Positions 1,998 through 62,846 of a stretch of DNA of 64,000 nt are shown piece after piece. The DNA comes from Andalucia godoyi And28 (lineage: Eukaryota; Protista; Jakobida). Numbering within the stretch: position 1 is the first letter of the stretch; every line of letters begins with the position of its first letter. The notes beneath the pieces are model-generated. The model ran no database searches, was not told the DNA's origin, and worked only from the letters and a program-made list of their open reading frames with translations. Location: assembly GCA_009859145.1 (NCBI GenBank), contig VRVR01000008.1, forward strand, positions 195,494 to 259,493. Reading direction: 5' to 3'. Made by a program: the position numbers and the translations under genes.

Positions 1998-2143
1998 CGC
2001 AACATCTATCTTGGGAACGTCGCTCATGCCGAGGGGCGTGTTGGGGCCTACCCCCTTCCCAATCATGCTGTGCATGTTGCTGGGTTGCAACATTGATTAT
2101 GGGTGGTCAGCGATGGTTATCCGTGGTTACTGTACAATGTAGG
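1998..2143 (+). mobile_element. Fanzor2/IS607-TnpB 3'-end remnant with putative omegaRNA scaffold (FzA)
   Basis: cgc aac atc tat ctt (RNIYL), then gcgtgttggggcctacccccttccc, hairpins at 2074-2093 and 2094-2109, and terminus TGTACAATGTAGG. Colinear with the 17.25-17.57 kb remnant. Confidence 0.8.
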
Positions 2144-2474
2144 CGTAGTTGTGAAGAGCAGGGCGTTGATGCTGACTGTAAAATAAAAAAAAGCCCCTTT
2201 GCGCCAAATAGTGTTTGCCTTGAAGGGTAATACTTGTTGCTTCGTTTGCTGCTGCTCCTTTCTCCAAACACGTCATTACACACTTTGCGCTTTCACGCTC
2301 AGTGCGATAAATAAAAAAAGACAGGAACGCAGCGGATCGAAGTCTGGCTCTCTGCTAGAGACAGACCGCAGGAAAAAAGAAAGGAAGAATAAAGGCTGCG
2401 AAAAGACTGCGAGAGATAGAGGAAAATAGAGAAACCACAGGCAAGAAGATAGCGCTGAATAAGAAGAGAAAGAG

Positions 2475-4334
2475 ATGCATCTGCAGCCTGCATTCCGTCC
2501 TTTGTTATGTTGTTTGTTGGCAAGTTTGGTAGTTTTGAATGGTGTTTCTCGTGTATGTGCAAATGACGAAGAGTTTGTGGCTGCGATCTGTGCTGAAGAA
2601 GAGCATCTTGAGGCCCGACTAATGCTGATGCTGTTTGGACTTCTTGCGATATCCTTGCTGATTGTCTACTTGCTTATTCGGTTTCATTTCCACTTTCTTC
2701 CAGAGTCGATTGCAATGATTGCCGTAGGTGCGCTTGCTGGACTTTTCGTGAAGCTGTCGAATTCTCACGAGGACATTGGTGCGCTTCGGCTATCTCCAGA
2801 GATATTTTTTATCTTTTTGCTGCCATCCATCATCTTCGAAGCCGGGTATGCGCTGGAAAAGAAGGACTTTTTCGGGAATATCGGGTCCATTGTTGTATAT
2901 GCCGTTTTGGGAACGGTGCTGTCGACCATCGTGATTGCGGTTGGCCTATATGCGTTTGGAACCTTCGGCGCTTCCGCTCCGCTTTCCATGCTGGACTGTT
3001 TGCTCTTTGGAGCCCTCATTTCTGCCGTGGATCCAGTCGCCACACTTGCCATCTTTTCGGCGCTCAATGTGAACCCGACTCTCCATTATCTTGTTTTTGG
3101 AGAATCGGTGGTGAACGATGCGGTGGCAATCGTGCTTTACAAGACGTTCGAGTACTTTGTTGACCACGAATTTTCGGCGCTTTCCATTTTGCTGGGTGTC
3201 TGGCAGTTCATCCTGCTGTTCTTTGGGTCCACCATTCTTGGAATCGCAGTTGGCTTCCTCAGTGCGCTGTTTTTCAAGTACGTTGCGATGAGAGACCACT
3301 TGGTGCTCGCGTTGTCCATGCTGACCGTCCAGGCATACATGGGATATTTGCTCGCGGAGGCAATCTCCCTTTCCGGAATCATGTGTGTGCTGTCGTCGGG
3401 AATTCTCATGTCGTACTATGTGCGACCAAACTTGACTGAAGAGCTGTCTGTGATGTCTGCTCGTGTATTCAAAATGTTCGCGTTCATTTCCGAGTCGTTT
3501 GTTTTCTTGTACCTTGGATTTGCGATCTTCGTTTTTGAACACAAGGTTCACTACGGCCTTATCTTCTGGGGCATCGTATTTTGCTTGCTGGGCCGTGCCG
3601 CAAACATTTATCCGCTTTCGTTGCTTCTTAACAGAGGCCGGACGAACAAAATCTCGGCAAAGAATCAGTTTGTCATGTTCCTTGCTGGCCTTCGTGGCGC
3701 CATCGCATTCGCTCTCGCTATTGGACTCGTGGGGCCGAAATCTCCTGTATCGGATGGCAAAATGATCTTCACAACAACACTGGCCATCGTGATGTTCACG
3801 ATTGTCGTGTTTGGTGGATCCACGCTACCCTTGCTCAAATGGCTCAAGGTTGAGCCCAAGGTGACCATGTCAAAAATGGAAGAGTTTGAAAACGTCACTT
3901 CTGCACAGGAGTACTGGAGTCAGGTCATGCGCAATCGACAGCAGCAGGGGAGAAATTGGCTTGTGCGGCTGGATGAGAAGTATTTGAGACTGTGGTTTTC
4001 GAGATCCGATGCGCTTCCCCCCACTGTTGTCCGCGAACAGACCGAGCTGTCCCGACTGGACTCGTACTGGCATGTGAATGATCCAGAAGATCATGACCAG
4101 GCGAATCTTATCGGCGCATCGGTCGCTACTGCGGATTCCAATCGGGGTGGTAGCATGGCTCCAGGGTCCCCACAACACCACGATGATTCCCCTGTGCACC
4201 GATCGGCCTCGCTGTCCCCAGGTCAGATGGAAGTCGTCCACATCTTGGACGACATGGTTCGCGACCCAATTTATGCATCTAAGCTTGCACAAGCTGTGGA
4301 GCTCTTCAAGAACGTCCATGCCCATGCAAAGTGA
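2475..4334 (+). CDS. SLC9A8: Na+/H+ exchanger, NHE8-like (CPA1 family)
   Basis: 619-aa multi-TM ORF with FFIFLLPSIIFEAGY, FGALISAVDPVATLAIF, LVFGESVVNDAVAIVL and AGLRGAIAFALA motifs. Confidence 0.9.
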   Translation: MHLQPAFRPLLCCLLASLVVLNGVSRVCANDEEFVAAICAEEEHLEARLMLMLFGLLAISLLIVYLLIRFHFHFLPESIAMIAVGALAGLFVKLSNSHEDIGALRLSPEIFFIFLLPSIIFEAGYALEKKDFFGNIGSIVVYAVLGTVLSTIVIAVGLYAFGTFGASAPLSMLDCLLFGALISAVDPVATLAIFSALNVNPTLHYLVFGESVVNDAVAIVLYKTFEYFVDHEFSALSILLGVWQFILLFFGSTILGIAVGFLSALFFKYVAMRDHLVLALSMLTVQAYMGYLLAEAISLSGIMCVLSSGILMSYYVRPNLTEELSVMSARVFKMFAFISESFVFLYLGFAIFVFEHKVHYGLIFWGIVFCLLGRAANIYPLSLLLNRGRTNKISAKNQFVMFLAGLRGAIAFALAIGLVGPKSPVSDGKMIFTTTLAIVMFTIVVFGGSTLPLLKWLKVEPKVTMSKMEEFENVTSAQEYWSQVMRNRQQQGRNWLVRLDEKYLRLWFSRSDALPPTVVREQTELSRLDSYWHVNDPEDHDQANLIGASVATADSNRGGSMAPGSPQHHDDSPVHRSASLSPGQMEVVHILDDMVRDPIYASKLAQAVELFKNVHAHAK

Positions 4335-4535
4335 GAGCACAGGCGCCGAGTTTGGAAGCTGATTGTTCGGTTTTCATGTTTTTATCTTTTCTTGTTTGAT
4401 GAGTTTTTGTTTGGTTTGTCCGCTTCAACCTTGATGAAAATATTCTTAGCCGGGTTGTTTTTTTATTTTTTATTCCTCTTTTTCCCGGATTGCTCGTTCC
4501 AAATATTCTACACCACAACAGTGTTGTGGGAGTGA

Positions 4536-6701
4536 TCATCTGCCAAACAACCGATCCGAGACGTCGCGATCGCAGAACAGACAAAACACTTTCTCATGAT
4601 CTGGGAAAAAAGGATGACGTCTGTTCTCATCCAGACAGATGCGCAAACGCCGTGCGCCGCAGCGCGAACAACCCGCTGGCAAAACTTGCAAGACCTTCAC
4701 AGTCTCTGGGAAGAAGAAGGGTTTTCCAGGACAGTTTGTCCCCGGAGCACACGCAGATATATAAAATTGATTCTTCTTGGACAGCCTTGTTTTGTACGGT
4801 CGATTGCAAGTCGCACAGTTACGATGCAATGAGGACGACACAAATGCATCATGGTCAATTGCAAAGTATCGTGCAAGCACGTCATCCAGCACGCCTTCTT
4901 TCTGGAGAGCCGACAAAAAAGCCGCTTTGTACATTCTGACCGCTTCCGCAAGTGCCACGTCCTTCACCAGCCGTCCCTGCGCGACAAGCCGCATATCGCT
5001 CTCCATTTTGGCTCGCAGAAACGGCTTCCACAACGGCGTCAAGTCCATTTCTCGATAAGCCTCCACCAGCGCTTTTCCTAGAGGTGTCGCTGCAAACGTG
5101 GTGCCATTCTTCGTAACATATCCTCGGTTTTGAACTTGTTGAATATGCGACGCAATGGTGGCATCCGTGCCTATTCCGTTTGAATCCATCGTGGAAATCA
5201 AGTCGGCTTCGGACAAGAGCGGAGGAGGTGCGGTGCGCCCTTCCGTCATCAAAAGATTTGTTGGAGTAAACCGCTGCCCCTGCTCGAAAGCAGGCATGAC
5301 TCGATTGCTCCATGATTCATAGATGTACACTTCGAGAAAGTTTCGCTGCTCAATGATCAGTCCGGAGGCAGAGAATGTCTCGGTATCGGCAACGATGCAC
5401 TGCACAACCGTCTCGCTTCCAATGGCATCTTGTGAACAGCATGCTAGGAAATGCCGAGTGACAAGCTCGTAGACTTTGCGTTCATTATCGTTCTCGAAAT
5501 CCGTTGTGAACTTGGTTGGATGAATCGGAGGATGAGCATTGTCGTTTGAGCGGCCTTCCCGTGGACGAATGAACTTTCCACCGTCCACGAGTCCGGAAGC
5601 ATATCCCCCCCATTGGTCCGATTCGAACTGCAACGCAACGAGGGTCTTGATTTCGTCATCGGAAATAGTATCCCGAACAAACAAATCCGTTTCTGTTCTC
5701 GGATATGACAAAATACCCTTCTGATACAGTGCTTCGGCCACGTGCATCGCATCTTCACCAGACATTTGCAATTTTCTCGAAGCAAGCTTTTGAAATTCGA
5801 CGGTGTTCAGCGGCAGTGGTCTCCATTTTCGAGCCTGTTTCTTGTGGACAGACTGAACAACTGTTTCCGGGGCTCTCATGCAGCGATCATACAGGACAAA
5901 ACACGTGAGGCGGTCGAAGAGCCTACCACGGCTCCATGCAAAATGGACCGTGTCCAACTTCATGTCGATAGAGTAAAATGTTTCTGGTCGAAATGTCTCA
6001 ATCTTATGCTGCCGCTCCACCACAAATCCAAGAGTTGGGAACTGACACGGGCCATAGGAATAAATAACGCGCCGTCCGTTTTCCTCTCTTCGCAACCCAG
6101 GGAACTTTTGCTGCAAATGATCCGTCATCCATCTTGTAAACGCAGCTCCGATTCTCAAATCAACTTCCTGTCGAAACGCTACTGCATCGGCTTCATTCTT
6201 ATTCGGTTGTACCAAATTCAGAAACGCTCGATTGATATCCCGGGGTGTGAACGACGAAAATCGTGCGCGGAGAACATGAAACGGCCGACTTCTGCGTTCC
6301 TTTTGGCAAATTCCGATAATCTCAAATCCTATTGCCTCGCCCTCCCTATCACAATCCGTCCAAATGACAAGCGTGTCCATATCTTTGCATTCCTTTTGCA
6401 GAGTGGTGATGATGTCCCGATGGTCTTCCGCAATAGTCTCCACAACAGGCGCAGAAAACGCTTCTACAGATTCGCATCTTCCCCATCCATATTCATCCGG
6501 GAAATCAAGACCGCAAACGTGACCTCTGACAGAAGTAAACCGCATCGTCACTGATCCAAGCTGCGGATGCGTCGACTCGAATTCCATCGTTGCAACGCGA
6601 CCCACGCTGCGATTTGAAACTCGAGCATTTTGCGATAGAATATTTACAATTTCTCGAGCCGCCGATGGCTTCTCGGCAACATTCAGAACAATTCGCCCCA
6701 T
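4536..6701 (-). CDS. TOP3A: DNA topoisomerase III alpha (type IA)
   Basis: Likely start MGRIVLNVAEKPSAA at 6701. TOPRIM (VAEKPS, WTDCDREGEAIG), SYGPCQFPTLGFVV, catalytic LSYPRTET, GIGTDAT and C-terminal Cys clusters. Confidence 0.93.
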   Translation of the reverse strand: MGRIVLNVAEKPSAAREIVNILSQNARVSNRSVGRVATMEFESTHPQLGSVTMRFTSVRGHVCGLDFPDEYGWGRCESVEAFSAPVVETIAEDHRDIITTLQKECKDMDTLVIWTDCDREGEAIGFEIIGICQKERRSRPFHVLRARFSSFTPRDINRAFLNLVQPNKNEADAVAFRQEVDLRIGAAFTRWMTDHLQQKFPGLRREENGRRVIYSYGPCQFPTLGFVVERQHKIETFRPETFYSIDMKLDTVHFAWSRGRLFDRLTCFVLYDRCMRAPETVVQSVHKKQARKWRPLPLNTVEFQKLASRKLQMSGEDAMHVAEALYQKGILSYPRTETDLFVRDTISDDEIKTLVALQFESDQWGGYASGLVDGGKFIRPREGRSNDNAHPPIHPTKFTTDFENDNERKVYELVTRHFLACCSQDAIGSETVVQCIVADTETFSASGLIIEQRNFLEVYIYESWSNRVMPAFEQGQRFTPTNLLMTEGRTAPPPLLSEADLISTMDSNGIGTDATIASHIQQVQNRGYVTKNGTTFAATPLGKALVEAYREMDLTPLWKPFLRAKMESDMRLVAQGRLVKDVALAEAVRMYKAAFLSALQKEGVLDDVLARYFAIDHDAFVSSSLHRNCATCNRPYKTRLSKKNQFYISACAPGTNCPGKPFFFPETVKVLQVLPAGCSRCGARRLRICLDENRRHPFFPDHEKVFCLFCDRDVSDRLFGR

Positions 6702-7069
6702 AATAATATTCTGCACATCGAACAGCCCCAACTCGTTCACTGACCGCGTATTTTTGTAATGGGGGTTTTCCTTTAAATTATATATATATGCATATATATT
6801 CACACAAATAAAAGACAGACACAGACACAGAGACGCAGTAAAAGAGTGCGACTGTGCGCGTGCGACTGTGCGCGTGTGTGTCGGGGGAGAATATTTGGAG
6901 ATTTTCCCGCGAAATGAAGAACGGCAGGTGAACTGACTGTGTTTTTCGGATGGTCGAGAAAAGAAAGACCCTGTGCACAAACTTCGAGCTGCAGCTTCGC
7001 GCTTCCCCCCACCCCCACCCCATCCCCTGGGAAAGCGACGGATCACGTTCCGCTTGCGAAAATTCGCAG

Positions 7070-7159
7070 ACGCCGAGGGATGGCTTTGAAACGACAAGCG
7101 GCCGACATTGAGGATGCATCCTCAGCCGGTGGCCATGGATAATCTGTGTACAATGCAGG
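7070..7159 (+). mobile_element. Fanzor-type right-end remnant (FzB), internally deleted
   Basis: gccgaggg is shared with FzA, followed by ACATTGA-hairpin-TCAGC (16-bp palindrome TGAGGATGCATCCTCA at 7109-7124) and terminus TGTACAATGCAGG at 7147-7159. Confidence 0.65.
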
Positions 7160-7481
7160 TGATACTCACAGACGGATGTTCTTGGTCTCTCGCGTATAGT
7201 TGGGCACTGTGCATTCCGCAACATTTCTTACCGGACGGCGGGGATCGTGACTGGGACCGGGTGAGAAGTGAGTAGTGCTCGCAGCGTTTTTACTGAAACA
7301 CGATGGTGACAAAAGTGGGCTGCATTTGAAAAATCAAAAACGCAAAACCAATCATCACACCAACAACATCAGTGATGATGATGACGACAATAATAATAAT
7401 AATGGTAGTAATAATCATTCTCATTATCGCAAGAACAAGAACAATGACGATCAGCCGTTTAAAAAAATGATATATATGGAC

Positions 7482-9506
7482 TTAGACTACGGAAATTGCA
7501 GAACTCGACAATGTGATCGACGCGGTGCAAGAACTCGTGCTTGCTCCAAAAAGGAGTTTCGTGTCCGAGGTGAACAGCAACGGGTCAACGTACCGTCGAT
7601 TCAAGAAATAGCGATTGATGAACCGAACCATGCCCAAGGACATGAGAGACCAGAAGAAGAAAAAGAACATCAGCAACAGAAGCAACGATGCATTGTCCAA
7701 TTGGTGTTTTGCAATGCCATAAAACACACCGGATAATACTCCCAGAACAAGCCATCGAACCGCATTATCTTCCGTCGCAGAGAGAGAGAAGCGGATTCCC
7801 AGAAGACATGCGCTGTGATGGGACACCGCAATCCTGTGCATGAAAAACTGATGAACGACAAACGCAAAGAATGCAATGGAGAATGTCCATCCAAAGACGA
7901 CTCCCAGTGTGACGCATATTCCCATTGTGCAGCAAAACGCTAGAAGCGAATAGCACACAATCAAAAAAGACTGCTGCTCCGTCTTGGAATCCATCAATCG
8001 GTGTTCTTTGCCACCAAGGGACACCCGTTCGTGAATTTGATGAACGATCCAATTGAAGAGCGGGCCAACGAGGAACAAGATGTAATCCGAGAAGGACTCT
8101 CGATCTTCCTCGTAATAAGTTGGGAACAAGCGTGTCTTTGAAAAAGGCATTTCCACGCTCTTGTTATGAAGTCGGCGAGAGAGGTCGTCTGGTGCCGAAT
8201 AGAGTGCTGCATACTTGTGCAACTTCTGCGGATCCAGCGCAGGATTCTTCACGACAGGCGGGAGATAAGAATGCGGATCTATACCAAACGAGCAATCCTC
8301 GATACAAAGAACTGCATGTGAGTATCGCAATTTGGGAATCAATCCAAACAGCCGACGAAACAGGCGCTCTAAAACATGCTGCTTCGCAGGAAGGATGTAT
8401 CCAATGGCAAAGTACAGGTCTCGCGGCATGAAGTACGCGTTCAGCAAATCCACGATTTCCTGCAATCGATAGTGCCTCTTTCTGTCCTTCGTTCCGTGAT
8501 ATCGAACACTGATTGCATTTGTCAGTCGCTCCCATTCATAGTCCGTAATTCGGTCCCGAAGGCCGGCGAACGGAACCCTTTGAATTTCCGACTTCCCAGC
8601 AGGAACAGGCCAACAATAGCATGGAAAACTCTGTTGCCCCTCAATGAAAAATTCCATGTAGACACGCGAAATTAAAAGAGACGGTGTATAGCGTGTCTTC
8701 GACCGCACATACGGAGGGAAAAAGTGAGAAGAAAGATGCGAATCCAAAGATTTTAGACGCGAAATCCGGTGAGCCCACAGAGACACTGCCCACAGAGGAA
8801 TGTTCGAGAACCCAATCAAGATACCAACCGCATAAGCCTGAAATGCCAGCGGAAGCACGGTGACGCTCACAGAAACAAGAACCAGACACGCAACGACACG
8901 CAATCGTATTCGCAAATGTTGAGAAACAATTATTTGCATGTCTGAAAACCACTGCGAAGAAAACGTTTGGTCTTCCTCTCGTCCCAAAACTGTTGACAGC
9001 AACGGATACAACTCGGTGGTTCGAAGTCGAAAAGACGAGTCAAAGAAGGCGACAAAGGAACAGAAGGATTGGTGCGCATTTCGAAGAAGAGAATCTCGAA
9101 CGGAACCAGAAGAGACGCCTTGGTGTGGTTGTTCCTGCAATAGCTGAATATCAGCATCATCATAATCCGCAGATCGGTATCGAGAATGCAACCATAAATA
9201 AATGCAAAGCAGCAAGTATAGAGTCAGTGAAATAGACACAAATCCAGCAAACACATATTCCCACTGAACGTTGTGCAGCGAACCAAGGTAGATGAATAAG
9301 TCAACCGTGTCTTCGTTTGAGCCCATTTCTGTCTGCGTTCGGACGCTTTTCTCTGTGTTGTTGTTGTTGCTGCTGGTGTTGTTGTGATTCCTTTGGTTAT
9401 TCGTGCATGACGAGAGAATGTTGGGAGAAGAAATCTCAAAATGAGAAGCACTGCTGGCATGCTTTGGCTGCGGAGAGGTCGGATCCGGAGCATTGCTGAC
9501 ATGCAT
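7482..9506 (-). CDS. Uncharacterised multi-pass membrane protein
   Basis: Long uninterrupted ORF with several hydrophobic segments. First ATG at 9506, alternative start MGSNED at 9326. No family recognised. Confidence 0.75.
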   Translation of the reverse strand: MHVSNAPDPTSPQPKHASSASHFEISSPNILSSCTNNQRNHNNTSSNNNNTEKSVRTQTEMGSNEDTVDLFIYLGSLHNVQWEYVFAGFVSISLTLYLLLCIYLWLHSRYRSADYDDADIQLLQEQPHQGVSSGSVRDSLLRNAHQSFCSFVAFFDSSFRLRTTELYPLLSTVLGREEDQTFSSQWFSDMQIIVSQHLRIRLRVVACLVLVSVSVTVLPLAFQAYAVGILIGFSNIPLWAVSLWAHRISRLKSLDSHLSSHFFPPYVRSKTRYTPSLLISRVYMEFFIEGQQSFPCYCWPVPAGKSEIQRVPFAGLRDRITDYEWERLTNAISVRYHGTKDRKRHYRLQEIVDLLNAYFMPRDLYFAIGYILPAKQHVLERLFRRLFGLIPKLRYSHAVLCIEDCSFGIDPHSYLPPVVKNPALDPQKLHKYAALYSAPDDLSRRLHNKSVEMPFSKTRLFPTYYEEDRESFSDYILFLVGPLFNWIVHQIHERVSLGGKEHRLMDSKTEQQSFLIVCYSLLAFCCTMGICVTLGVVFGWTFSIAFFAFVVHQFFMHRIAVSHHSACLLGIRFSLSATEDNAVRWLVLGVLSGVFYGIAKHQLDNASLLLLLMFFFFFWSLMSLGMVRFINRYFLNRRYVDPLLFTSDTKLLFGASTSSCTASITLSSSAISVV

Positions 9507-9615
9507 CCGTAGTCTGTACAACAAAACGCACAAAACGTACAGTGCATGGGAATATCTAGCAAGGATGGGACATATTTATTTATTTTATTTATTTTTTTAA
9601 TCATTCATTCATCCA

Positions 9616-11933: not shown

Positions 11934-12001
11934 TGTTCCCCACCGACATCCTCGAATTGAAACAATGTGCAGCAGTTCGCACTTCGCAGGTCCGTCAAGA
12001 G
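11934..12001. repeat. 68-bp dispersed structured repeat, copy 1
   Basis: Reverse complement matches 43437-43504 at 50 of the first 54 nt, with a 29-nt identical core. Confidence 0.9.
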
Positions 12002-15200: not shown

Positions 15201-15203
<3 letters not shown>

Positions 15204-17185: not shown

Positions 17186-17246
17186 GCCCCCTTAGATGAT
17201 TGACTTTCGTAGGATCGATTATTCATGCAACATTGAATCCACAGCC
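17186..17246 (+). mobile_element. Fanzor-type omegaRNA remnant, second subfamily (FzC), truncated by FzD
   Basis: 17186-17235 is 40/50 identical to 62751-62798, which follows a DRDWNEARN motif. Seven of the eight substitutions are transitions. Confidence 0.7.
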
Positions 17247-17567
17247 CCTACATTATACACTGAGTATGCATATCTACGAATAGACGTGCATATTCAATCT
17301 TGCATCCCGTTGTCGGGAAGCGGATAGGCCCCCAACACGCCTCACGACGCTCTTCAGATAGATGTTCCGCACTCCGTTCCCAATCTCGATCAATCTGCGA
17401 GCTGCACGCGGGACATGCAAAACGCTTTTTTGCTTCCGCCTAAGACGTGCATGGATCTCACCGCAGCGCCCGCACGTTTTGGACGTGTACTCCTCCGTCA
17501 CGATGGCAACATGGCGCTCGCGATACTCGGTCGCCGTATGACACAAACGTTGCAAAAAGTGAAACCA
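17247..17567 (-). pseudogene. Fanzor2/IS607-family TnpB C-terminal pseudogene fragment plus right end (FzD)
   Basis: WFHFLQRLCHTATEY...VAIVTEEYTSKTCGRCGEIHARL. After removing three single bases it reads GGSKKAFACPACSSQIDRDWNGVRNIYLK (RuvC-II Glu, CxxC...CxxC zinc finger, RuvC-III Asp). It is followed by hairpins and terminus TGTATAATGTAGG at 17259-17247. Confidence 0.9.
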
Positions 17568-17896
17568 ACGAATGATAGAATGATAGATGGTTACGGATGT
17601 TGCCTTAAAGGTCGAGCGTGCGTAAGCACGGATTCCTGTGAAGCAAACGTGCTAGTGTCGGCCAGTGTTGATCGTGTCTGTTTATGCATACTTCCGTATG
17701 CATGAAAATGACGGGTTATTATTCAACGGCATGACATGGTGGTGGTGATGAGGGGAGGAAGACAGCGGCAGGACAGACTTTGAAAGACATCATGTACGAC
17801 CCAAAAACAAAAAACAAAAACAGAATTAATTAATTGATAATAAAAATGAAAACAACCTTCGCCATATCTATTACTTTCAGAAGCTCGAGAAGATTT

Positions 17897-22552: not shown

Positions 22553-22573
22553 GGGGGGGGGGGGGGGGGGGGG
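22553..22573 (+). repeat. G21 homopolymer in a divergent promoter region
   Basis: Seen directly. Homopolymer length may be affected by sequencing error. Confidence 0.85.
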
Positions 22574-42992: not shown

Positions 42993-43149
42993 CCTATACT
43001 GTACCTGAATCATTGCTCGCCATCCATGTGCAGTCTTGCATCGAAGCCGAATGTGATTTTCAGTGCAGAGAGTGGAAGTAGGCCCAACACGCCGAAGCGT
43101 TCTTCAAACTGATACTGCGCGCACCAATCTAAACTCGATCCACACGCGC
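42993..43149 (-). mobile_element. Fanzor2/TnpB 3'-end remnant with putative omegaRNA (FzE)
   Basis: gtg gat cga gtt tag att ggt gcg cgc agt atc agt ttg aag (VDRV*IGARSISLK, point-mutated DRDWNGARNIYLK), then ggcgtgttgggcctac, gatgcaagactg and terminus GGTACAGTATAGG. Confidence 0.8.
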
Positions 43150-43206: not shown

Positions 43207-43228
43207 GGGGGGGGGGGGGGGGGGGGGG
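43207..43228 (+). repeat. G22 homopolymer between two element remnants
   Basis: Seen directly. Confidence 0.85.
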
Positions 43229-43436: not shown

Positions 43437-43504
43437 CTCATGACGGACCAGCGAAGTGCGAACTGCTGCACATTGTTTCGATTCAAGGATTGTCAGCGGG
43501 AACA
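43437..43504. repeat. 68-bp dispersed structured repeat, copy 2 (inverted relative to copy 1)
   Basis: Matches the reverse complement of 11934-12001 and lies 6 bp from the PUS10 stop codon. Confidence 0.9.
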
Positions 43505-43509
43505 GACTT

Positions 43510-51043: not shown

Positions 51044-51068
51044 AGTCGTGATTAATCACTTGCTGAAA

Positions 51069-52868: not shown

Positions 52869-55800
52869 ATGGTGGGAATTGTAAAGGTAAGAGTTGTAGC
52901 GGCGAGAGACTTGCCAGTGATGGACCGCGCCAGCAATCTAACTGATGCATATGTTGAAATCCATTTCGTTGACCGGCCCCCTGTCCGGACTGAGATTGCG
53001 TACAAGTCTCTTTCTCCGTTGTGGAATGAAGATTTCAGAGTAGATGTCTCATCTGAGACTGCATTGCATGATTCCCCTCTCCAGTTTCATGTGTATGATC
53101 ATGATGTGCTGAACGATGATTTGATCGGTGTTGTGCTTGTTGACTTGCGTCCTCTGTTGTGCGGTTCGCCGTACGGTTCTGAAATTTCTGGATGGTTTGG
53201 GATATATGATCCCCTCCTGGGTATTCGTGGAGAGTTGTACGTTGTTGTCAAGCTTGTGTTTTTTGGTGATAGCTACACTGTTGGATCCGTGGGACTTCCC
53301 ATTTTTGGATCGGTTTGTGTCCCAGACGGATATTCTCTGTCCAGCGTGTGTGGATTTGTAGAAGAGTTGCTTATTGATGATGATCCGGAACACGGTTGGA
53401 TGGATACGTTTCGTTCATCTAGAGCTTCTAATCTAGCTCGAATGGATGTTCTGTACGGGTTATCTGGCCGCTTGCGTCGCGTGCTGGATCGGAAAGCCCG
53501 TGATATCGGCGCAAATGCAATTGTGGGGTTTCGGCAGTGTTTTGATTTTGAAAAAAAATATGGCATCGTTGTACGAGGATACGGAACGGCTTGTGTGCTT
53601 GTCGAAAGATCGGTAAGTGGAGGACAAGTCATGCCAATAACAGTGTACGGGACCAGTTCAGCACCGAAGCAATTGTCATTTTCACCCAAAACACATCGAT
53701 CTCTTGATAGTGCATTTCTCCCTTCCTCTCCTCAGCCTCAGCCTCTCGGACACTCGCCAGAAATTGCATCCGGTCGTATTTCAATGACAGCGGGATCGGT
53801 TGACTCAGACTCGACTGCAGGCCGAAGACTTCGAAAATCGAATCCGGCAATGAAGACTGTTGAAGTGCAAGACGTTTCGTTGCTCACGATGTCCGCTTTT
53901 CCTCGCTTGGGGGTTCGTAGAATTGGAGGCGTTGTGTGTGCTCGGTCAGTCAAAGTCCTTGGTGAAAGCAGTGGAAAGAAAGAAGCCGTGTTGCAACAGC
54001 ATGATGCTTGGTGGCAGGAACTGCGCCATGAGATCCGCTCTCATGCCAAGAATTTGAACTGTGCTGCTGTTGTTGGCTATCTAGAAGAAGCTACCGTATG
54101 TGATGATATCATCATTTTAAGTGTTTCGGGTACTGCTGCAATGCTAGACCCGGGCGTTGTTCCTGTTGTCGGATTTGCGATTCGAGACACGCTCTTGGCA
54201 GATTCGTCAAGTACTCGATCACCCCGACGATCGACGCCCTCAAAGAGGAGACCTTGCTCTGTTTGCCATTTGCCATTTCAGATTGAAAAGTCACCATTTC
54301 CGTTGAAAAAGTCAGTGTGCGGTTCCTGTGGTTCTGCTTTTGTTCATGATCTGCTCCTGTGCACGTGCGAAGCTCCTCTGGAAGTTCAATCAGCAGGATC
54401 TGCTCGACTTGTTCAAGCTCGCGTTTGCAAAGTTCGTCGCAAGGGGGACTCCGAAATAGGAGCAGTGTTTGTCTCCGAAGTATTGCCATTCCTTGAGTAC
54501 CAGTTGTATCAGCAACTTGTGATGAAAATACGCATGCACGGGCTCAATGCTGCATTCAGTCTGAGAATGCAGATTTCTTTATCTGCAGACTACGTCGCTG
54601 CCACAGCCACCTGCTCCGGATTGTTTGTGGATTGCTTGCCGCTTCCCCCTCCTATTGTTATTAGAAAGACGTTGTCTTCTATTGACCCAGCGATTCTGGG
54701 TGTGAAACGCCAGATCGAAGACTTGTGTTCTGCTAATCGGCACTTATACGTGTCTTACGTCCAACAGAAACGTCTGAAAGATGACAATCGTCGTGTTGCA
54801 GAGGACAATGAAGATGGCGGCTCAGAAGGGGAATACAGTTCTTGTTATTCGTCAGAAGAAGATGCTGATGATCACGATTCCGCAGGATCGTCCGGATCGG
54901 GAGATGAAGTGGAGGATACTGAAAATGACAAAGCCGTCAAAAGAAGAACATCGAGTTGGCGAAACCAGCAATTGCTCAGTTCTGAAACAGAAGTTGAGCC
55001 TTTGGTTATGGACGTAGACGATGAGATTGAACAAGATATGATGCTTTCGCTTCTCGAACCACCGCTGCCGTCAGGCGTGCGTACGTGTGCATCCTCCGCT
55101 GGATACAGCTCATTGTTCCCAAATGATTCTTTGGCACATCTTCAGCATGTTTTCGTCATCCGTCGGTTTCAATGGGCTTTTGTTGATGCAGATCGATTAA
55201 ATCAGTTCTATTCGGCGGCACATCACGAGGCACTGACCAGTTTGTGCAATTCGATCATCTTTTTCCAACCGTGCAGAGTTGTTGGATTTGAGTCTCAGTC
55301 GTCGTTCCTCAATGAAAGAGGAGAACTGCAGATTGTGACTTCGGCTACCGTCGAAGCAGAAAGTGCGGCAATGGATGTGCCGGCTTCTCGACGGCCATCT
55401 TCGAAGTCCACCGATTCCAGCGTTGGTATTCGGGGACATTCCTCGGGCCTTGGCGGTGCATACAACAGAGATAGCGAAGAGGACTTGCTGTTTCTAATGG
55501 ATCATGATTCAGGAACTGCTTCACTAACGGACAAGCCGCAGGAAGCAGATTCTCCTGAGTCGCGGACAGATACATTGGCGAAAACTATCTCGGCAGAGTC
55601 TGTCATCTTGAGCTCGACTGACAGTCTTCCGTATGCCACTGTTTTGCGGAACGTGGGTCACATTTCGGTGCATGTCGTACGAGAATCCTCAGATGTAGAG
55701 AAAACAAGTTCCACTTTGTCTAACTTTACATATCAAGCGATGGCTGATGTAGAATCATTAATACGATCCCATGTTGCTTCCTTGGGAGGAAATGCTCTCC

Positions 55801-55982
55801 TTCATGTTCGGATCGACAAGTTCATGTTCGAAGACAACGAAACCAATCATGAAGCATACTGTTTTGTCTCGATCAGCGGAGACGTTGCGTTCGCAGACCT
55901 TCGAAATTCAGACCGCGAACGCGATGACATTTCTTGTCGTATCTGGCTCCATGGTTCTCGATCCCCTGCATTTGGGAAATGA
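52869..55982 (+). CDS. C2CD5: C2 domain-containing protein 5-like (C2 plus YbjQ-like domains)
   Basis: MVGIVKVRVVAARDLPVMDRASNLTDAYVEI, GANAIVGFRQCFDFE, IGGVVCARSVK, WWQELRHEIRSHAKNLNCAAVVGYLE and LPFLEYQLYQQL. Confidence 0.88.
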   Translation: MVGIVKVRVVAARDLPVMDRASNLTDAYVEIHFVDRPPVRTEIAYKSLSPLWNEDFRVDVSSETALHDSPLQFHVYDHDVLNDDLIGVVLVDLRPLLCGSPYGSEISGWFGIYDPLLGIRGELYVVVKLVFFGDSYTVGSVGLPIFGSVCVPDGYSLSSVCGFVEELLIDDDPEHGWMDTFRSSRASNLARMDVLYGLSGRLRRVLDRKARDIGANAIVGFRQCFDFEKKYGIVVRGYGTACVLVERSVSGGQVMPITVYGTSSAPKQLSFSPKTHRSLDSAFLPSSPQPQPLGHSPEIASGRISMTAGSVDSDSTAGRRLRKSNPAMKTVEVQDVSLLTMSAFPRLGVRRIGGVVCARSVKVLGESSGKKEAVLQQHDAWWQELRHEIRSHAKNLNCAAVVGYLEEATVCDDIIILSVSGTAAMLDPGVVPVVGFAIRDTLLADSSSTRSPRRSTPSKRRPCSVCHLPFQIEKSPFPLKKSVCGSCGSAFVHDLLLCTCEAPLEVQSAGSARLVQARVCKVRRKGDSEIGAVFVSEVLPFLEYQLYQQLVMKIRMHGLNAAFSLRMQISLSADYVAATATCSGLFVDCLPLPPPIVIRKTLSSIDPAILGVKRQIEDLCSANRHLYVSYVQQKRLKDDNRRVAEDNEDGGSEGEYSSCYSSEEDADDHDSAGSSGSGDEVEDTENDKAVKRRTSSWRNQQLLSSETEVEPLVMDVDDEIEQDMMLSLLEPPLPSGVRTCASSAGYSSLFPNDSLAHLQHVFVIRRFQWAFVDADRLNQFYSAAHHEALTSLCNSIIFFQPCRVVGFESQSSFLNERGELQIVTSATVEAESAAMDVPASRRPSSKSTDSSVGIRGHSSGLGGAYNRDSEEDLLFLMDHDSGTASLTDKPQEADSPESRTDTLAKTISAESVILSSTDSLPYATVLRNVGHISVHVVRESSDVEKTSSTLSNFTYQAMADVESLIRSHVASLGGNALLHVRIDKFMFEDNETNHEAYCFVSISGDVAFADLRNSDRERDDISCRIWLHGSRSPAFGK

Positions 55983-58656
55983 CCAGCGTTATATCGTTTT
56001 GTTGCATGAAGAGCTGATTGTGCAAATGACAGTACGCGATATTATGAGGCACTTTATCCAATTATAAAAACTCACGCTGCGACTTCGCTGGATGCGCTTC
56101 CAACACTGCAAATCCGGCCATTCGCAGAGGGAACGATGGAATTCGGTTACCGGGACATAAGCAACAGCAAACACAAGATGTAAACCAGAAAAAGACTCTG
56201 TGACCCCAGAATCAGATGGCAATACCAGCAAACAAACCAATGCATCACACCTACTCCACGAACATAGAGACCATTCCCAATATGTGCAGCTTCACCAATG
56301 CGCTGACCGAATGCACAACAGCACGATTTGCGTTCTTGAACTGCGAATGGTTCGACGAAAAAGACTTCAGTCTGGAGAGACAGAAGCGGTGAGAAATGTT
56401 CACGTGATTCAAAAGAAGATGCTGGCCTTCGGTAGATGGAGTCTCTCAGACACTAGCCGGTTTCCAACATGCCAGCCGCACTTCTGCACAGAGGACACTC
56501 CAAAGAATTTGGCTTCTGCTCGTGAAGCTGTGCACGGCGGGAATGTCAGTTTCCTGGGATTCAGCAGATGAAAGAAGCGACAAGTATAAGAATGATGCAT
56601 TCAGCTGCATGCATTACAACATGGAAAGTCGGAAATCAGTATCCAGCCTGGAAGAAGTCTTCAAGTTTCTACAGAAGTGTCTGACAGTGAATTCTCGTTC
56701 TGAAACATGTAATCACATCAGCTCAAAAAGATAGAGATCAGTATGTGACGTCGTCAGTGGAGATTGGTTTGCGGATCTCCGCCGGAAAAGTATGACGCTG
56801 CTGAGGATGCCAGTCCCGTATGGCAAGAGAAACTGTCTCGATAGTTCGGACAGCGGTTTGCTACCGGAATAGAATCGCGATTGATCTTGGACTCTCTGTG
56901 CCGCATCATTTCAATAACTGACAATGAAACTCGTCGGAGATGAGCGGTTTCTTTACAGATTCGTTTGGAAACTCGCGGTTCGCGGTCTTCTGCATTTCGG
57001 ATTCAACGATACTCAGGAGCTGCAGAATTCCGACGAAGATGCGCGGGCTGTCGGATCCGGGTTGTGTTTATCAAGTAAACATACAAAATAACCGGGCCTT
57101 AAAGACGAAAGGAGGTGAACTGAACTATCCAGCAAACAATCAGGTTTGAATTCGACAACGATAATTTACGGTCCTACAGTGTCCGATTCGAAGCCGCAGG
57201 ATACTAATAATTCCGTGCGTGTTGGTCAGTATTCGTCTAGCACTCGCCAAATAGATTGGATTTCTGTTTTAACGGATAGAAACTGGCGTGTCCGTCAACT
57301 CGCTTGGACGAACCCAGTTTGTAAAACCAAAAAAATATTTCGGAATCATTCGCGGAGTGTTGGGACTGTGCCCAGTTTCAAACTCGTAAAACATTCATTC
57401 ATATCTACCTTGTAAAGGCCGGGAGGGACAGAAACTGAATACGCAATCTAGCAACTGTGTTTCTGATTAGAATAAATCGCACTCGTTGAGTAGACAATAC
57501 TGTTATAAAGAAATAGTCGGGAGGCGGGGCACTGTGTCATTCTGCACTGATCATCGTGTCCTCCCCGCCTGCAACGTCTTGAATAGGTTATTCGTCCTGG
57601 GCATCATTCGTTTCCTTTACGGGAAGTTATTTCGGATCGCGCACCTACCTCCCGGCATGCGCAAGTCAGCGACGTTAAAAGCGCCTGACTTTAAAGATAT
57701 TTCAGTATTCCCCGAGACGTGGTTTCCGTCCTGGGATGCTCACAGACTGCATCGAGAAAAAAATCAAACAAACACACACACCAAAAGAGGGAGCGGAAGT
57801 CCAGGCACTAATCGGGTGCAGGAGAAGGGAGTGAGAGCGCAGACACAAAATGAAGGAGGAAACCGGAAAATCGGAAGAAATGCCGTAGTTTCCAATTATT
57901 TTTTTTTGGAAACGCCCTTTCCAGTCTAAAATTTCCGACTGCTCGAATCGGACGAGGCGTCCAGTCTCTCGGTAGTATGTGTCTAAGCAGGCGCTCATAT
58001 GATGCACTCGGTTCCGGTGAGTCTACTGATGTGTTATGCAGCCACTTCCGCATTGACAGTCCGTTAGAACTTGAGATTTATCGTGAAGCGAGGTTTCGTT
58101 CAAGACGTGGTTCCCGGACTTGAGTGCCGCAAGCGGCATGTCTGACCATCTGTCGAAGGAGTTTCTGGTTTTCTCGGAGTGCCATTCCAAACTGTGTAAG
58201 ACCGTGGTCCGTCACGATGATCAGCATTTATACAATGTCGCCTCATTTCTGAGCCTGAAACCGCGCCATCAAGGAGTTCCTGCAGTGATGCCTTTCTCGG
58301 ATGCTTGTGGTGGAGGCTTCTTCACAATGGTGGTGAGGCAACGAGTCTGGAACAGCACTGATTGGAGAACCCCGTTGTTGCTTCTTTTTCATTTTGGGAC
58401 TGGGTGGGCGGGGGCAGGTGCATGAGACGCGGATTTCAAATCCGGATTTTTGATTTTGTTCGAAATGCGCCTTTAGCACTCAACCCCATTGTTCGGTGGC
58501 GAACCTTTTGGCGGAGTTCGTTGCTTTCTCGTATTTGGACACCCAATATTAAACAAAGGAACTCACGAAAATGAAAACACAGAAAATGGGTATATTGTTT
58601 TATCAAGTTGAAGTAGCGAAATGTTCAAGACTGATACTGAGGCAGGGAAACGGTTG

Positions 58657-60246
58657 TCAGTGTCGCTTGCCGCTGGTGGAAGCCAGAACTTGTTGGCAGA
58701 GGGCAACCAATGACGAGTCTCGTAGTCCAAGGTCAACAGCCCAATCGTACACCATATTTTGCACGGCTCGGACTGAGGAACGCACGTTTTCGGGAGCAAA
58801 GATTGCTCGCAAAATCGGAAGCACTTTGTGAGAAGTGAATCGAGTTGCCCAGTACGCATCGTTCACCGGATCCTGAAAAAGATCCACCCAGGCCTGGGGG
58901 TGCTGTCGGAGACGGAAACCCAACAAACGCAGAAGGACCGTGCCAGCAGACCACAGGTCGGCGGCTGTTCCACTGTGCGCCAAACCGGCGAGTGCCTCTG
59001 GGGGAGCGTAGTCGTTTGTGCCACAGATTCCATCAGTAAGATGCCCTTCCTCCATGACTGCAGGCGTGTTGGGTCCAGCCGAAACTGAAACAAAGGGAAT
59101 TGCAACCGCATGGCCAAAATCAAAGACCTTGACATTCCAGTGCTCGTCAAGTCCAATATTATCAGGTTTCACGTCTCGATGACAAACCTTGACGTCATTA
59201 TGCAGGAAGTCTAGAGCTTCAAGAATCTGTGAGAACAAAATACACGCGACCTGGTCCATGTACTGCAGCGCAGGATGCCGCTTCCACACAGATCCATGAG
59301 CTTTTCGAATGCCGTCTATTCGCTCTGTGTACTCGCACAAATCTCCATTTGGGACGCATTCCAAACACATGACCATCAGGCGAGACGTGGTGGGAATGTG
59401 CTCCTTCTTGTGTTGTGAGCAGACACCACAGTAATCTCTGTACATTGGCTGCGCATGAGGCGTGAAGTGCAGGCAACAGAGTCCATGTTCCGCTCCTTTG
59501 CATGCAATATCGGAAGATATAACAGAAGAGTATGCAGGTCCCATGGATCTGACCACACGAATTGCAGACCTTCGGTAGGAAGCAGAATTGTGCGCGATCG
59601 CTGTGATGCGCTCGAGAATCGCACATTCTGTGCGGAAGGCAGACTGCAATGTGTGAATTGACGACGATTTTCGGCCGGGCTGATCGACGGGGACTGCTTT
59701 CAAAGCCACCATGCATCCGTCATATGTAGAGCAGAGTACAACTTCAGAGTGTCCACCAACGTTCGCACGTCGTACCATCCGAAGATGAGTTGAGAACGGA
59801 GCGGCACGAATCAGGGGACCATAGATTGCAGAAAAGGGATCCACCACTGGGGCTTGGTCATGTTGATGATACTGTTGTTGCAGATGCTGGGGAGTTTGTA
59901 CCACAATAGCCGGAGTTGAGAACATCTGTGGAGGGCAGTGATTGCTGCTGATGATACTATTTCCGTTGCTGCTATTATGCAGCTGTTGCACCTGAGAGTT
60001 TGCCAGTGGGGAGACCGAAGCTGAGCATGATGGCGTAGCAGTTGCGGACGATTCCCAGGAACCCGATCTCGATGAAACAAGAGAAGCGTTGCCGGAAATC
60101 GAAACAGGACTTTCCGGTCCACTAATCATGAGATGTGGCAGGGACATTGGCATCAAGGAATGTGATGTTGTCTGACATTGGGAACGAAAACACGCACTGT
60201 TCGAAGTGCCGTCATTCAACAGGACATTCTGGTTCAGAGAATACAT
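58657..60246 (-). CDS. Ser/Thr protein kinase with low-complexity N-terminus and a Cys/His insert
   Basis: GGHSEV, VALK, CHRDVKPDN, DFG, CGTNDYAPPE and DLWSAG. Confidence 0.9.
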   Translation of the reverse strand: MYSLNQNVLLNDGTSNSACFRSQCQTTSHSLMPMSLPHLMISGPESPVSISGNASLVSSRSGSWESSATATPSCSASVSPLANSQVQQLHNSSNGNSIISSNHCPPQMFSTPAIVVQTPQHLQQQYHQHDQAPVVDPFSAIYGPLIRAAPFSTHLRMVRRANVGGHSEVVLCSTYDGCMVALKAVPVDQPGRKSSSIHTLQSAFRTECAILERITAIAHNSASYRRSAIRVVRSMGPAYSSVISSDIACKGAEHGLCCLHFTPHAQPMYRDYCGVCSQHKKEHIPTTSRLMVMCLECVPNGDLCEYTERIDGIRKAHGSVWKRHPALQYMDQVACILFSQILEALDFLHNDVKVCHRDVKPDNIGLDEHWNVKVFDFGHAVAIPFVSVSAGPNTPAVMEEGHLTDGICGTNDYAPPEALAGLAHSGTAADLWSAGTVLLRLLGFRLRQHPQAWVDLFQDPVNDAYWATRFTSHKVLPILRAIFAPENVRSSVRAVQNMVYDWAVDLGLRDSSLVALCQQVLASTSGKRH

Positions 60247-60312
60247 TGGCTAAATCTATCTAGAGGCAAGTATCGAAGAGATATATATGTGTATATAAAG
60301 AACGATAAACAC

Positions 60313-60336
60313 GATCACACGATCACACGATCACAC
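60313..60336 (+). repeat. (GATCACAC)3 tandem repeat upstream of the kinase
   Basis: Three perfect copies. Confidence 0.8.
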
Positions 60337-61711
60337 GAGACAAAATAAAACAGGATCGATCCGGGCAAGGTTGAAGGGATGTGCAGACTGTGTGAGCAGA
60401 CAGGAATCACCAAAAATCGTTCGCGGATGGATAGGAAACTAGTGCTTTCGCAGACCTTGAGAAAGATAATAGCAGTGCACGGCGGTGGATCAGGCACAAA
60501 AAAAATACTATTCACCAACAAGAGAAGAAAAAAGGAAGAAAAAGAAAAAGACAGGAAACGAAAAAGCGAGTCGCCCACGCCACACACATAAAGAGCACCA
60601 AAAAGAAAAACAACGAAAGGCCCCCACGGAGAAAAAGCAGCACTGGTTCGGAGGGAAACCGAAGATGTGGGGTGATCAATCCCACAGCATTTCTCCGATC
60701 GGGGGCTTCTGATTGCCTCGATTCCTTTTCGGTGCTGCATTCGGTGCCCCGTTGTCGGCGGTCGACTGTGTTTGTGTGACAAATCCTTCCTTTTTTAGCA
60801 CGCAAATCGCCGTGCCACCGGCGAAACCACGGCCATCCCCCGTTGCTTATTGACAGCGCCGCCGACGATGCCCGCCTCTGCTGAGGATACTGCCTGGAAA
60901 GGAAGGTGCACTCGATGTGTCGGCGGTTAATTTCGTCTGTTTTCGAACAATTCAACGGCTTTGCTCGTATTTGACCGCCCGTGTGTGGCCAGCATCGGAA
61001 CTGCTACAGATCAGACGCTAGGATCGTCTGCGAAACATCTTGACGGACACTTCGGCTTCGATGAAGAGGAATTGAAGACTGCAGCGCCCACCTGCTTTCA
61101 ACAAGCCGCAAGCACCGTCCGAGCAGTTCGGGAACTTCCTGTTCGTTCCATCTGTCGAGCACTTCCATTTTTGTTTTTGGCGTGCTGTCTCTTGTGTCTC
61201 TCCGCCCGCTAGCAGCCCAGTACAGAAAAAATGCTTTGAGCACCGCGGTTACACAAATTTCTGTTTCGATTTTATTTTTACCGGTCCACTGGTACCCAGA
61301 TCCTTCTTGACGGAGATGCTGTCATGCGGGGATCAACTTTTCTTGTTCTTACGGAGAAGATTCTCGGTCGAAATTGGGTTGTTTGATTGGTTGTTGATCT
61401 TTCACCAGGACTCGCGTTCTGCCTGCTCGTCGCTGATTCGAGCCGTGGGAGGTCGTCCCCGCCGTTTTTTTGTGCTCCGTTGTGCTGCGCGCTCGTGCGG
61501 TTTCAACTGGAATTTGTTTACAGTCGCCAGAAATTGGATGGAAAAGCTTGTTGAATTGATGACGATTCCTTCTTTGTTTTTATTCCCTCACGACACGGAG
61601 GATGCACACTCTCGGACGGACCCCCCTCCCGTACCCAAGCAGTCTTTGTGGTTGGCTCAAGCAGGAGATTCATCCCAAAAAACCAAAAAAACAACAACCC
61701 CCAATCCAAAA

Positions 61712-62377
61712 TCATCGTTTTGGCCGGGCAGTCGACTTGGCAGAGGACGCTCTGCTTGGAGTTGCTGATTTGGAGCTCGATGCCTTTTTCTGGGGCGAAG
61801 CTCCCGGCACTGGACTGGCGGTAGTCGCCGGTGGGGGAGGGTTTGTTGCTGGTTTTGATTGCGCAGCAGCACCGGTGTGCGGATCCACTTCTCGCATCAT
61901 GCTGGCGAATTCCTCGAAGTCAATGTACCCAGACTTGTCTTCGTCGATTTCTGCAACCAAATCTTCAATCTTGATCGTGAGTCCCAAGTCCGCAACAGTT
62001 TGAATCAGCGTTTCGTTGCTAATGCATCCTGTGCGATCGGGATTTCCACCCAGAGCAACAAACGCTGCAACGAGGTCCATGTCAATGTCGATGCCTTTGA
62101 ACCGTTTCTTGTAAATGCGCTGCATTTGAAGAAAGGTCTCCCACGACAGTTCTGCATCATTGGTTGCATCCACTTCCCCAAGTAGTTGCATAATATCTTC
62201 CGCAGAAAGCACAGATGCACCCATTTCATGAAACACCTCCTTCAACTCGAAAATAGATATCCCACCCGACTTGTCGGAATCATGCTCATCAAACAGTCGA
62301 CGGGCTTCTGCGATTTCCAGCGGGGTTAAGATCTCATACACCTGTTCCTCTTCGTCTTGTTCGTTACTCGCCGTCAT
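61712..62377 (-). CDS. EF-hand Ca-binding protein resembling outer-arm dynein light chain LC4
   Basis: DSDKSGGISIFE and DEDKSGYIDFEE loops, plus the LC4-like AAFVALGGNPDRTG...LGLTIKIEDLV segment and a Pro/Ala/Ser tail. Confidence 0.8.
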   Translation of the reverse strand: MTASNEQDEEEQVYEILTPLEIAEARRLFDEHDSDKSGGISIFELKEVFHEMGASVLSAEDIMQLLGEVDATNDAELSWETFLQMQRIYKKRFKGIDIDMDLVAAFVALGGNPDRTGCISNETLIQTVADLGLTIKIEDLVAEIDEDKSGYIDFEEFASMMREVDPHTGAAAQSKPATNPPPPATTASPVPGASPQKKASSSKSATPSRASSAKSTARPKR

Positions 62378-62675
62378 ATTTCTATACTATATAAACGAGG
62401 AACACACGCAGTTCGATATTCTGGTTTCGTTTTTTTTTTGTTTTCGGTTTTTTTTTTTTTTTTGGGGTTTGTCAGCATCCCGAGACTGTTCCGAGTTGCT
62501 GATCTCATCCGAAAAGGCGGGTCCTTCTGTGCCTTTGACGTTTGCCAATCAGCCTTCTCGTGGTCCACGTCACTGCACATCAGAGTCCGATCTGCTGCTG
62601 CACGGTTTCCCCAGTTCTCCTTTGATCTCGCAGCCTGTGAACAGCATGCAGAACCCATGCATGTCTGTCCTTTTT

Positions 62676-62846
62676 GATCGAGACTGGAATGAAGCACGCA
62701 ATGTCTGTCTTGAAGAACACGGTGCGCACGCACTTGTGCGCCTGTAGCCTGCCCCCTTGACGGCTGGTTTTCGTAGAATCGATTGTTATGCAACTTTGCA
62801 ACAATACAAATCAGAGCCAACTGGCATTGATGCAGCGTATCGCAGG
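62676..62846 (+). mobile_element. Fanzor2/TnpB 3'-end remnant with putative omegaRNA (FzF)
   Basis: gat cga gac tgg aat gaa gca cgc aat gtc tgt ctt (DRDWNEARNVCL, three single-base changes from DRDWNGARNIYL). It is followed by agcctgccccctt, a block shared with 17186-17235, and a degenerate end GCGTATCGCAGG. Confidence 0.75.

Follow-up and report, generated by a model that had tools for sequence, protein, structure and literature searches.

Six right-end fragments in the window

The window, by which we mean the whole 64-kb stretch of DNA analysed here (part of contig VRVR01000008.1), was compact nuclear DNA of a eukaryote, with few introns, and its genes included housekeeping genes (Rrp5, Pus10, SBDS, topoisomerase III, a Na/H exchanger and a Cep57-like protein). 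It also contained six short fragments, termed copies A to F, which we identified as the omegaRNA-bearing right ends of transposons of the Fanzor2/IS607 type, and we regard this identification as secure. What is left of B, E and F is the guide-RNA unit of the element, 119-171 nucleotides (nt) in length, and the six fragments are probably inert today. The positions of the copies and of their RNA elements are given in Table 1. The initial annotation of this DNA had listed six remnants, and independent profiles confirmed that they are present at or near the positions given there and that they are related beyond chance; most limits needed little change, but B begins near 7041 and not at 7070. A seventh copy was not found by profile scans of the 64-kb window.

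Table 1. Positions of the right-end fragments and their RNA elements in the window, with the pseudoknot strands of the family
Feature	Position	Strand	Loop	Terminus	Description
Copy A	1997..2143	+			Right-end unit truncated on its 5' side; keeps the last ~33 Fanzor2-like codons and the whole omegaRNA-type scaffold; best preserved orphan
A stem-loop 1 loop	2047..2051	+	CCTAC		5' strand of the pseudoknot; pairs with GTAGG at 2139-2143
A long hairpin (stem-loop 3)	2094..2129	+			16 pairs, 8 of them G.U; fold of 2060-2143, z=-2.4
A terminus	2139..2143	+		GTAGG	3' strand of the pseudoknot and end of the element
A pseudoknot			CCUAC	GUAGG
Copy B	7041..7159	+			Eroded right-end unit starting at the GATC boundary and ending in GCAGG; from alignment and boundary extension
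Copy C	17186..17246	+			~60-nt piece of an F-type right end, ending before the hairpin and terminus; from blastn to F
Copy D	17247..17598	-			Broken 3' fragment of a Fanzor2-like gene (~95 codons: RuvC-II, zinc ribbon, RuvC-III) with a complete right end
D long hairpin (stem-loop 3)	17261..17296	-			14 of 16 pairs; fold z=-3.6, 0 of 200 shuffles as stable
D stem-loop 1 loop	17324..17328	-	CCTAT		Minus-strand reading; pairs with the terminal GTAGG at 17247-17251
D pseudoknot			CCUAU	GUAGG
Copy E	42993..43149	-			Right-end unit from the GATC boundary; from nhmmer
E pseudoknot	43078-43082 with 42993-42997	-	CCUAC	AUAGG	4 of 5 pairs
Copy F	62655..62846	+			Right-end unit of a divergent subfamily; sharp homology boundary at 62676
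F pseudoknot	62748-62752 with 62842-62846	+	CCUGC	GCAGG	CCTGC with GCAGG in the DNA; compensatory change
L002 pseudoknot			CCUGG	CCAGG
L012 pseudoknot			CCUAG	CUAGG	Located by complement search
L014 pseudoknot			CUUAC	GUAAG	Located by complement search

The relationship among the copies was evident from profile searches with nhmmer. In particular, a profile built from A and D alone recovered E (E=5e-7), F (4e-3) and B (6e-3), with no other match in the 64 kb, and a profile of the coding 3' end built from D and the foreign relatives L001 and L002 recovered A (1.4e-7), F (1e-6) and E (5e-6). When a single intact relative from a metagenome, L068, was used as the query, D (8e-29), A (1e-12) and E (9e-7) were found. 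Chance similarity was rejected, as profiles built without the tested copies recovered A, E, F and B. Copy C was tied to the family through F only (blastn, 80% identity over 50 nt, E=6e-6).

Pairwise similarity was weak: A and D matched with a BLAST E-value of 8e-4, B and E had no match, and a BLAST comparison of the window with itself missed the family entirely, which indicates that the family, as judged from these sequences, is old or diverse. Identities among the units ranged from 35 to 76%, with values relative to L068 of 76% for D, 72% for A, 64% for E, 56% for B and 47% for F; the pairwise alignment of A and B was ambiguous as to their subfamily relationship.

Assignment to the Fanzor2/IS607 family

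Copy D was the most informative for the assignment, as it contained the TnpB-type C-terminal region with the RuvC-II glutamate, the zinc ribbon and RuvC-III, and it matched the Pfam domain PF07282 (Cas12f1-like TNB domain) with an E-value of 1.4e-6 (tblastn, 3e-20). Only the RuvC-III codons remained in A, E and F, and those of A were matched by tblastn (2e-4). D also matched three protein relatives (P0001-P0003). The best Protein Data Bank match of P0002, the relative on which the placement against other TnpB and Cas12 proteins was run in place of the window fragments, was the mimivirus TnpB-like protein L79 (9b0l; E=2e-13), which ranked above Cas12f and ISDra2 TnpB. Together with the transposase gene of the relative L002 described below, the PF07282 and 9b0l matches support the proposal of the initial annotation that the fragments come from the TnpB/Fanzor family and are of the IS607/Fanzor2 type.

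Intact relatives were abundant. In public data they number over 1000, some of them in fungi and amoebae, and 65 giant-virus loci also encode relatives. A first scan of metagenome DNA returned no relatives, and a second returned one true relative, L071, which has the same right-end layout, and two probable chance matches. On L068, a JGI metagenome contig, positions 406-1756 encode an intact protein of 437 amino acids with HTH_OrfB, OrfB_IS605 and zinc-ribbon domains, followed by a right end that is 72-76% identical to A and D; with its intact gene and 154-nt right-end unit, L068 provides a useful reference for the family. We also observed that the 21-nt core of stem-loop 1, GGCGTGTTGGGGCCTACCCCC, is identical in L068 and A and is shared with L001.

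The relative L002, an intact element on an ENA metagenome contig, contained a MerR-type helix-turn-helix and a resolvase-type TnpA followed by a TnpB-like gene split by GT..AG introns, and is by this gene content a eukaryotic IS607-type unit. A remnant of such a serine-recombinase TnpA was absent from the window, and association with one was seen only in this relative. Just left of the L002 unit, at L002:590-610, the sequence ..GTGTAGG|CG resembles the right-end junction ..CCAGG|CG, which hints at insertion beside end-like sites; a profile search of the left flank revealed no second right end.

The nearest named protein to the D remnant was ANDGO_01483 (P0001 in our set), a hypothetical protein of 82 amino acids from the jakobid Andalucia godoyi in the EukProt database. 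This protein, encoded outside the window, is itself a fragment of the same Fanzor2-like family and is read in the same shifted frame as D. Two of the frame shifts in D are evidently common to ANDGO_01483, and this shared frame indicates that broken copies were duplicated.

The fragments were compared with two known groups. IS607-family TnpB reRNAs or omegaRNAs, such as that of ISXfa1 (Yoon et al. 2023, PMC10711439), are RNAs of ~150 nt that overlap the 3' end of the open reading frame (ORF) and extend to the right end; they form several stem-loops, an apical loop pairs as a pseudoknot with the guide-adjacent nucleotides, and their elements use a fixed end dinucleotide for the serine recombinase. 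The window copies share this anatomy but are eukaryotic and lack the ORF, TnpA and left end. Giant-virus Fanzor2 (mimivirus L79/ApmFanzor, PDB 9b0l; Bao and Jurka 2013, PMC3627910; Jiang et al. 2023, PMC10530073) is the best match of the intact relatives among solved structures, is likewise associated with IS607, and has a conserved, structured, non-coding 3' region ending at the right end. In contrast to the window copies, which are fragments of a family whose ORF reads through stem-loop 1, as it does in the closest relatives, most viral relatives carry stem-loop 1 after the stop codon.

Structure of the guide-RNA unit and its terminus

In L068, the unit extended from the RuvC-III codons to the terminal AGG and was predicted to fold into several stem-loops (z=-4.4), with the last ~12 nt single-stranded. 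The five nucleotides that close the element proved complementary to the loop of the GGGGCCTACCCC stem-loop, and the two strands covary. Upon alignment of the seven sequences listed in Table 1, 97% of the cells in this pseudoknot were paired and three of the five pairs showed compensatory changes; the covariation score was reached by none of 500 shuffles, and slid controls collapsed. For two of the seven 3' partners (L012 and L014), the terminus had been found by searching for the complement, and these two count for less. Stem-loop 1 likewise showed covariation in the named-pair test. Named pairs were used for testing the structure in place of a consensus fold, as RNAalifold returned no consensus structure on a plain MAFFT alignment; no Rfam family matched within the window. 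The same pseudoknot has been described for IS607 TnpB and predicted for Fanzor2 reRNAs, in which the RNA is ~150 nt long (PMC10711439).

The ordered blocks noted in the initial annotation thus correspond, as it had proposed, to the tail of the ORF and an omegaRNA-like scaffold that reaches the right end at a GG, although two of them had to be redefined. The GCGTGTTGGGGCCTAC block is real, but its label was corrected: it is the stem-loop whose loop pairs with the 13-nt terminus. The GCAA(C/G)ATTGA block is also real and forms the foot of the long hairpin, but a stop codon lies inside it in some copies only. In this hairpin foot, GCAACATTGA, the reading frame differs between A and L068. Because of these frame differences, and because stem-loop 1 follows the stop codon in viral relatives, conservation of the blocks as protein-coding sequence only was ruled out, and the comparison indicates that they are conserved at the nucleotide (RNA) level.

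With eight G.U among its 16 pairs, the long hairpin of A can form only in the RNA of that strand. A comparison by hand of this hairpin in A and D revealed three compensatory changes, five one-sided changes and two broken pairs.

Every terminus that is present (A, B, D, E and F) ends in AGG, and the homology ends there. The 150 nt downstream of the AGG showed no similarity between copies, which indicates that the terminus is real and agrees with the earlier statement that homology stops after the 13-nt terminus. As judged from the right end alone, the boundary lies at a fixed GG dinucleotide, with no inverted repeats or target duplication.

Erosion of the copies

The copies were eroded to different degrees, least in D and A, more in E, and most in B and C. 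The scaffold was complete in A and D and apparently in F. Copy A begins ~25 nt inside the unit, and its retained codons are unbroken. In D, approximately the first three quarters of the gene are gone, and the remainder contains at least two, probably three, frame shifts. In E, the coding remnant of ~25 codons is interrupted by one in-frame stop and at least one frame shift, and the hairpin is partly deleted. Internal deletions have removed the stem-loop 1 region from B, and C lacks the hairpin and terminus; F has an intact pseudoknot and an only modest predicted structure. Half of the copies therefore lack required parts of the scaffold, and the scaffolds differ by 25-55% between copies.

Folding of the whole units gave z-scores of -1.3 for D, -1.0 for F, -0.8 for A, -0.1 for B and +0.6 for E, compared with -4.4 for L068. 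Relative to L068, B has lost 26 of the 55 reference pairs, and its remaining positions pair at the chance rate, in a test of low power for diverged members of the family, as genuine elements (L071 and L002) also scored no better than chance. Covariation in the pseudoknot, the test named in the initial annotation, is present but reflects the active parents and not the present state of the orphans; as a record of constraint in those parents, it does not discriminate whether the orphans function today.

Copies C and D adjoin exactly, tail to tail (17186-17598). A D-type element was inserted inside the right end of an F-type element, of which C is the remaining piece, and this intergenic gap was therefore hit at least twice.

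Probable inert relics and the common 5' limit

Taken together, we favour the explanation that the six fragments are inert, non-coding right-end relics of IS607-type transposons with a Fanzor2 (TnpB-like) RNA-guided nuclease, and we consider it probable, with appreciable room for doubt. In an intact parent, the omegaRNA scaffold would have been transcribed from the final ~150 nt, which begin at the RuvC-III codons and end with the AGG. It would have had several stem-loops and the pseudoknot that joins the stem-loop 1 loop to the five terminal nucleotides, and the guide would have been taken from the DNA just outside the element. The nuclease, carrying this guide, would cut the empty site, and the element would then be copied back. 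The genes for the nuclease and the transposase would be gone from the present copies, as would the left end, and the copies would be eroding at different rates.

The 5' limits of the fragments are not easily accommodated by simple decay. For B, E and F, anchored upstream extension of the homology stopped 0-4 nt from the first base of GATCG.GA, a level equal to that of shuffled sequence, although a weak protein match suggests that F may retain ~20 nt more upstream of this boundary. The homology of D runs 119-156 nt further upstream. The claim that three copies start at nearly the same RuvC-III point accordingly holds for B, E and F but does not extend to A. An upstream coding region hidden behind an intron was considered and rejected, as no Fanzor-like coding sequence was present upstream of A, B, E or F; E lies only ~350 nt from the neighbouring gene.

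Several observations weigh against the relic explanation. Since three sublineages end within a few nucleotides of one point, independent random truncation is an unlikely cause of the common 5' limit, which is the one feature that simple decay leaves unexplained. Every fragment that could be recognised includes the right end, with no internal piece among them; this is partly explicable by detection bias, in that only the 3' region is conserved enough across subfamilies and short relics of other element parts would be missed. Copy A keeps 85% of the L068 reference pairs, compared with 63% expected (none of 1000 random draws reached this value), many of them as G.U pairs, so that some constraint on RNA structure acted along the A lineage, possibly after truncation. 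Finally, subtelomeric scaffolds with transposon- and viral-like sequences were left out of the published assembly of A. godoyi (PMC7050145). The possible causes of the 5' limit are multiplication of an already truncated copy, recurrent truncation at one site, and functional retention of the RNA unit; under the relic explanation, multiplied pre-truncated copies or recurrent truncation at one internal site would account for it.

Multiplication of a truncated copy would be expected if the units were non-autonomous mini-elements, each consisting of a short left end and the omegaRNA/right-end unit, which relied for movement on an IS607-type TnpA from another source and multiplied once a single internal deletion had founded them. 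We regard this as unlikely, though it is the most credible of the alternatives. The sharp 5' boundary common to B, E and F fits it, as do the frame shifts common to D and ANDGO_01483, which show that broken copies multiplied, and the density of six fragments per 64 kb. A weak motif, CGnTTnC(4+), preceded four copies (A, B, E and F) at a distance of 35-100 nt in element orientation, and these sites made up four of its seven occurrences in the window; however, the motif was defined only after the data had been seen, and a leave-one-out profile gave it no support. The upstream regions of B and F also gave a 40-nt local alignment that none of 200 shuffles matched in score, which is marginal support for a shared left part. 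Against mini-elements, leave-one-out profiles built from the upstream regions of the copies in the window never recovered the left-out copy, no copy showed a significant match of its right-end tail motif to its own upstream region, and the window lacked a TnpA remnant. The search for a common left end was thus negative in both the leave-one-out profiles and the end-motif test, and matches seen by eye were not significant.

A precedent for mini-elements is provided by the bacterial omegaRNA-carrying PATEs of Geobacillus (Meers et al. 2023 preprint), which are protein-less guide-RNA units that need TnpB and TnpA in trans. Unlike the window copies, which are highly diverged and for which no left end was found, PATEs keep both ends, occur as near-identical young copies and are of the IS200/IS605 (Y1 transposase) type. 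Recurrent short remnants of one end after loss of the body are also known as solo long terminal repeats and one-ended transposon relics, whereas the window relics have no terminal direct repeat for recombination.

A sharp, unit-length 5' boundary would also correspond to the RNA's own start if the units were DNA retro-copies of processed omegaRNAs. This origin is very improbable: the copies share no A-rich tail or target duplication, D has 150 nt of extra coding sequence, the exact end-to-end junction of D and C fits a DNA insertion, and no evidence of a reverse transcriptase was present in the window.

Guides, nuclease and present function

The relic explanation was also weighed against present use of the units. 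To our knowledge, the guide is the flank in every TnpB or Fanzor element, and the putative guides of the window copies are indeed local flanking DNA. Exact 20-mers from the guides of A, B, E and F, four of five in all with D left aside, were searched in IMG/VR, and no credible viral match was obtained. The guides of A, B and E had no exact 20-mer in that database, and the F guide had one exact 20-nt match (L069:800-819, in a 4.5-kb contig) that did not extend, had no adjoining GG motif and was judged to be a chance match, about the number expected.

The 64-kb window contained no Fanzor N-terminal part, no TnpA remnant and no recognisable left end. In two protein searches (the second considered through the best 120 of its 1061 matches), no full-length A. 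godoyi homologue was found among the matches, and the only named ANDGO protein was the broken 82-amino-acid fragment. An intact cognate nuclease, whose absence the initial annotation counted among the findings that together would reduce the loci to inert fossils, was thus not found in the window or among these A. godoyi matches. The further proposals of a CRISPR-like guide library and of a large repertoire of stand-alone guide RNA loci were not sustained: the guides are local flanks, and the four searched had no convincing match in viral contigs, the scaffolds of B, C and E are deficient, the predicted folds are weak and no nuclease was found in the window. Nothing supports a working guide library here.

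A narrower possibility is that three units (A, D and F) remain in use as orphan guide RNAs and depend on a Fanzor2 supplied in trans, encoded either by autonomous copies missing from the assembly or by a giant virus during infection; they could then be minimal homing loci or form a dispersed set of guides. In favour of this, the retained piece has the length of the guide-RNA unit, the substitutions in A preserve structure, the pseudoknot is intact in all three, F has a run of five T 18 nt past its terminus, and extra stand-alone fRNA copies have been reported in Chlamydomonas (PMC10530073). On the other hand, the structures of B, C and E are broken, the copies have no promoter or terminator pattern in common, the 25-55% divergence of the scaffolds is hard to square with a single protein partner, no intact nuclease is present in the window or among the listed ANDGO matches, and the guides are the local flanks with the search results given above. 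We therefore consider such use improbable. The stand-alone fRNA copies of Chlamydomonas reinhardtii (Jiang et al. 2023, PMC10530073) are similar in being dispersed eukaryotic Fanzor guide-RNA copies without a nuclease gene, but they are highly conserved, lie in Helitron2 elements and occur beside six intact Fanzor1c genes, whereas the window copies are eroded and no intact gene was found.

A related suggestion, to which we give similarly little credence, is that the units are minimal RNA-guided selfish loci, each cut down by deletion to the exact omegaRNA unit. A Fanzor2 supplied in trans, again from unassembled subtelomeric autonomous copies or an infecting giant virus, would be directed by the unit's RNA to cut the empty allele of the unit's own site, and the unit would then be copied in. 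We kept this suggestion open because of the sharp common 5' boundary and the structure-preserving substitutions in A. If it were true, eukaryotic loci consisting only of a guide RNA could persist and spread without a nuclease or transposase of their own.

Genomic setting and other features

The character of the window agrees with the description of the A. godoyi genome as ~20 Mb in size, tightly packed and nearly without introns (PMC7050145). The sole repeat found by BLAST of the window against itself was an inverted pair of ~69 nt (11934-12001 and 43437-43504; 88-93% identical), and each of its copies follows the stop codon of a minus-strand gene at a distance of no more than ~300 nt; the repeat may represent a regulatory element or the gene for a small RNA. 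Homopolymer runs were also observed, with 21 G at 22553-22573, 22 G at 43207-43228 and 9 C at 1893-1901.

Significance

Parts of this picture are known already: protein-less omegaRNA units have been described as PATEs and extra fRNA copies in Chlamydomonas, and the anatomy of the window copies matches that of the guide-RNA regions of IS607 TnpB and Fanzor2. In the literature searched, we found no paper that links Fanzor with Andalucia, and the present fragments place elements of the Fanzor2/IS607 type in a jakobid-like genome. They also show that the guide-RNA pseudoknot of these elements can be read from genomic relics through covariation, and that the proteins annotated as hypothetical include at least one piece of a transposon, ANDGO_01483. 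Should the common 5' limit be true of the whole genome, it would be informative about the way such elements shrink, or about whether units reduced to a guide RNA can persist.

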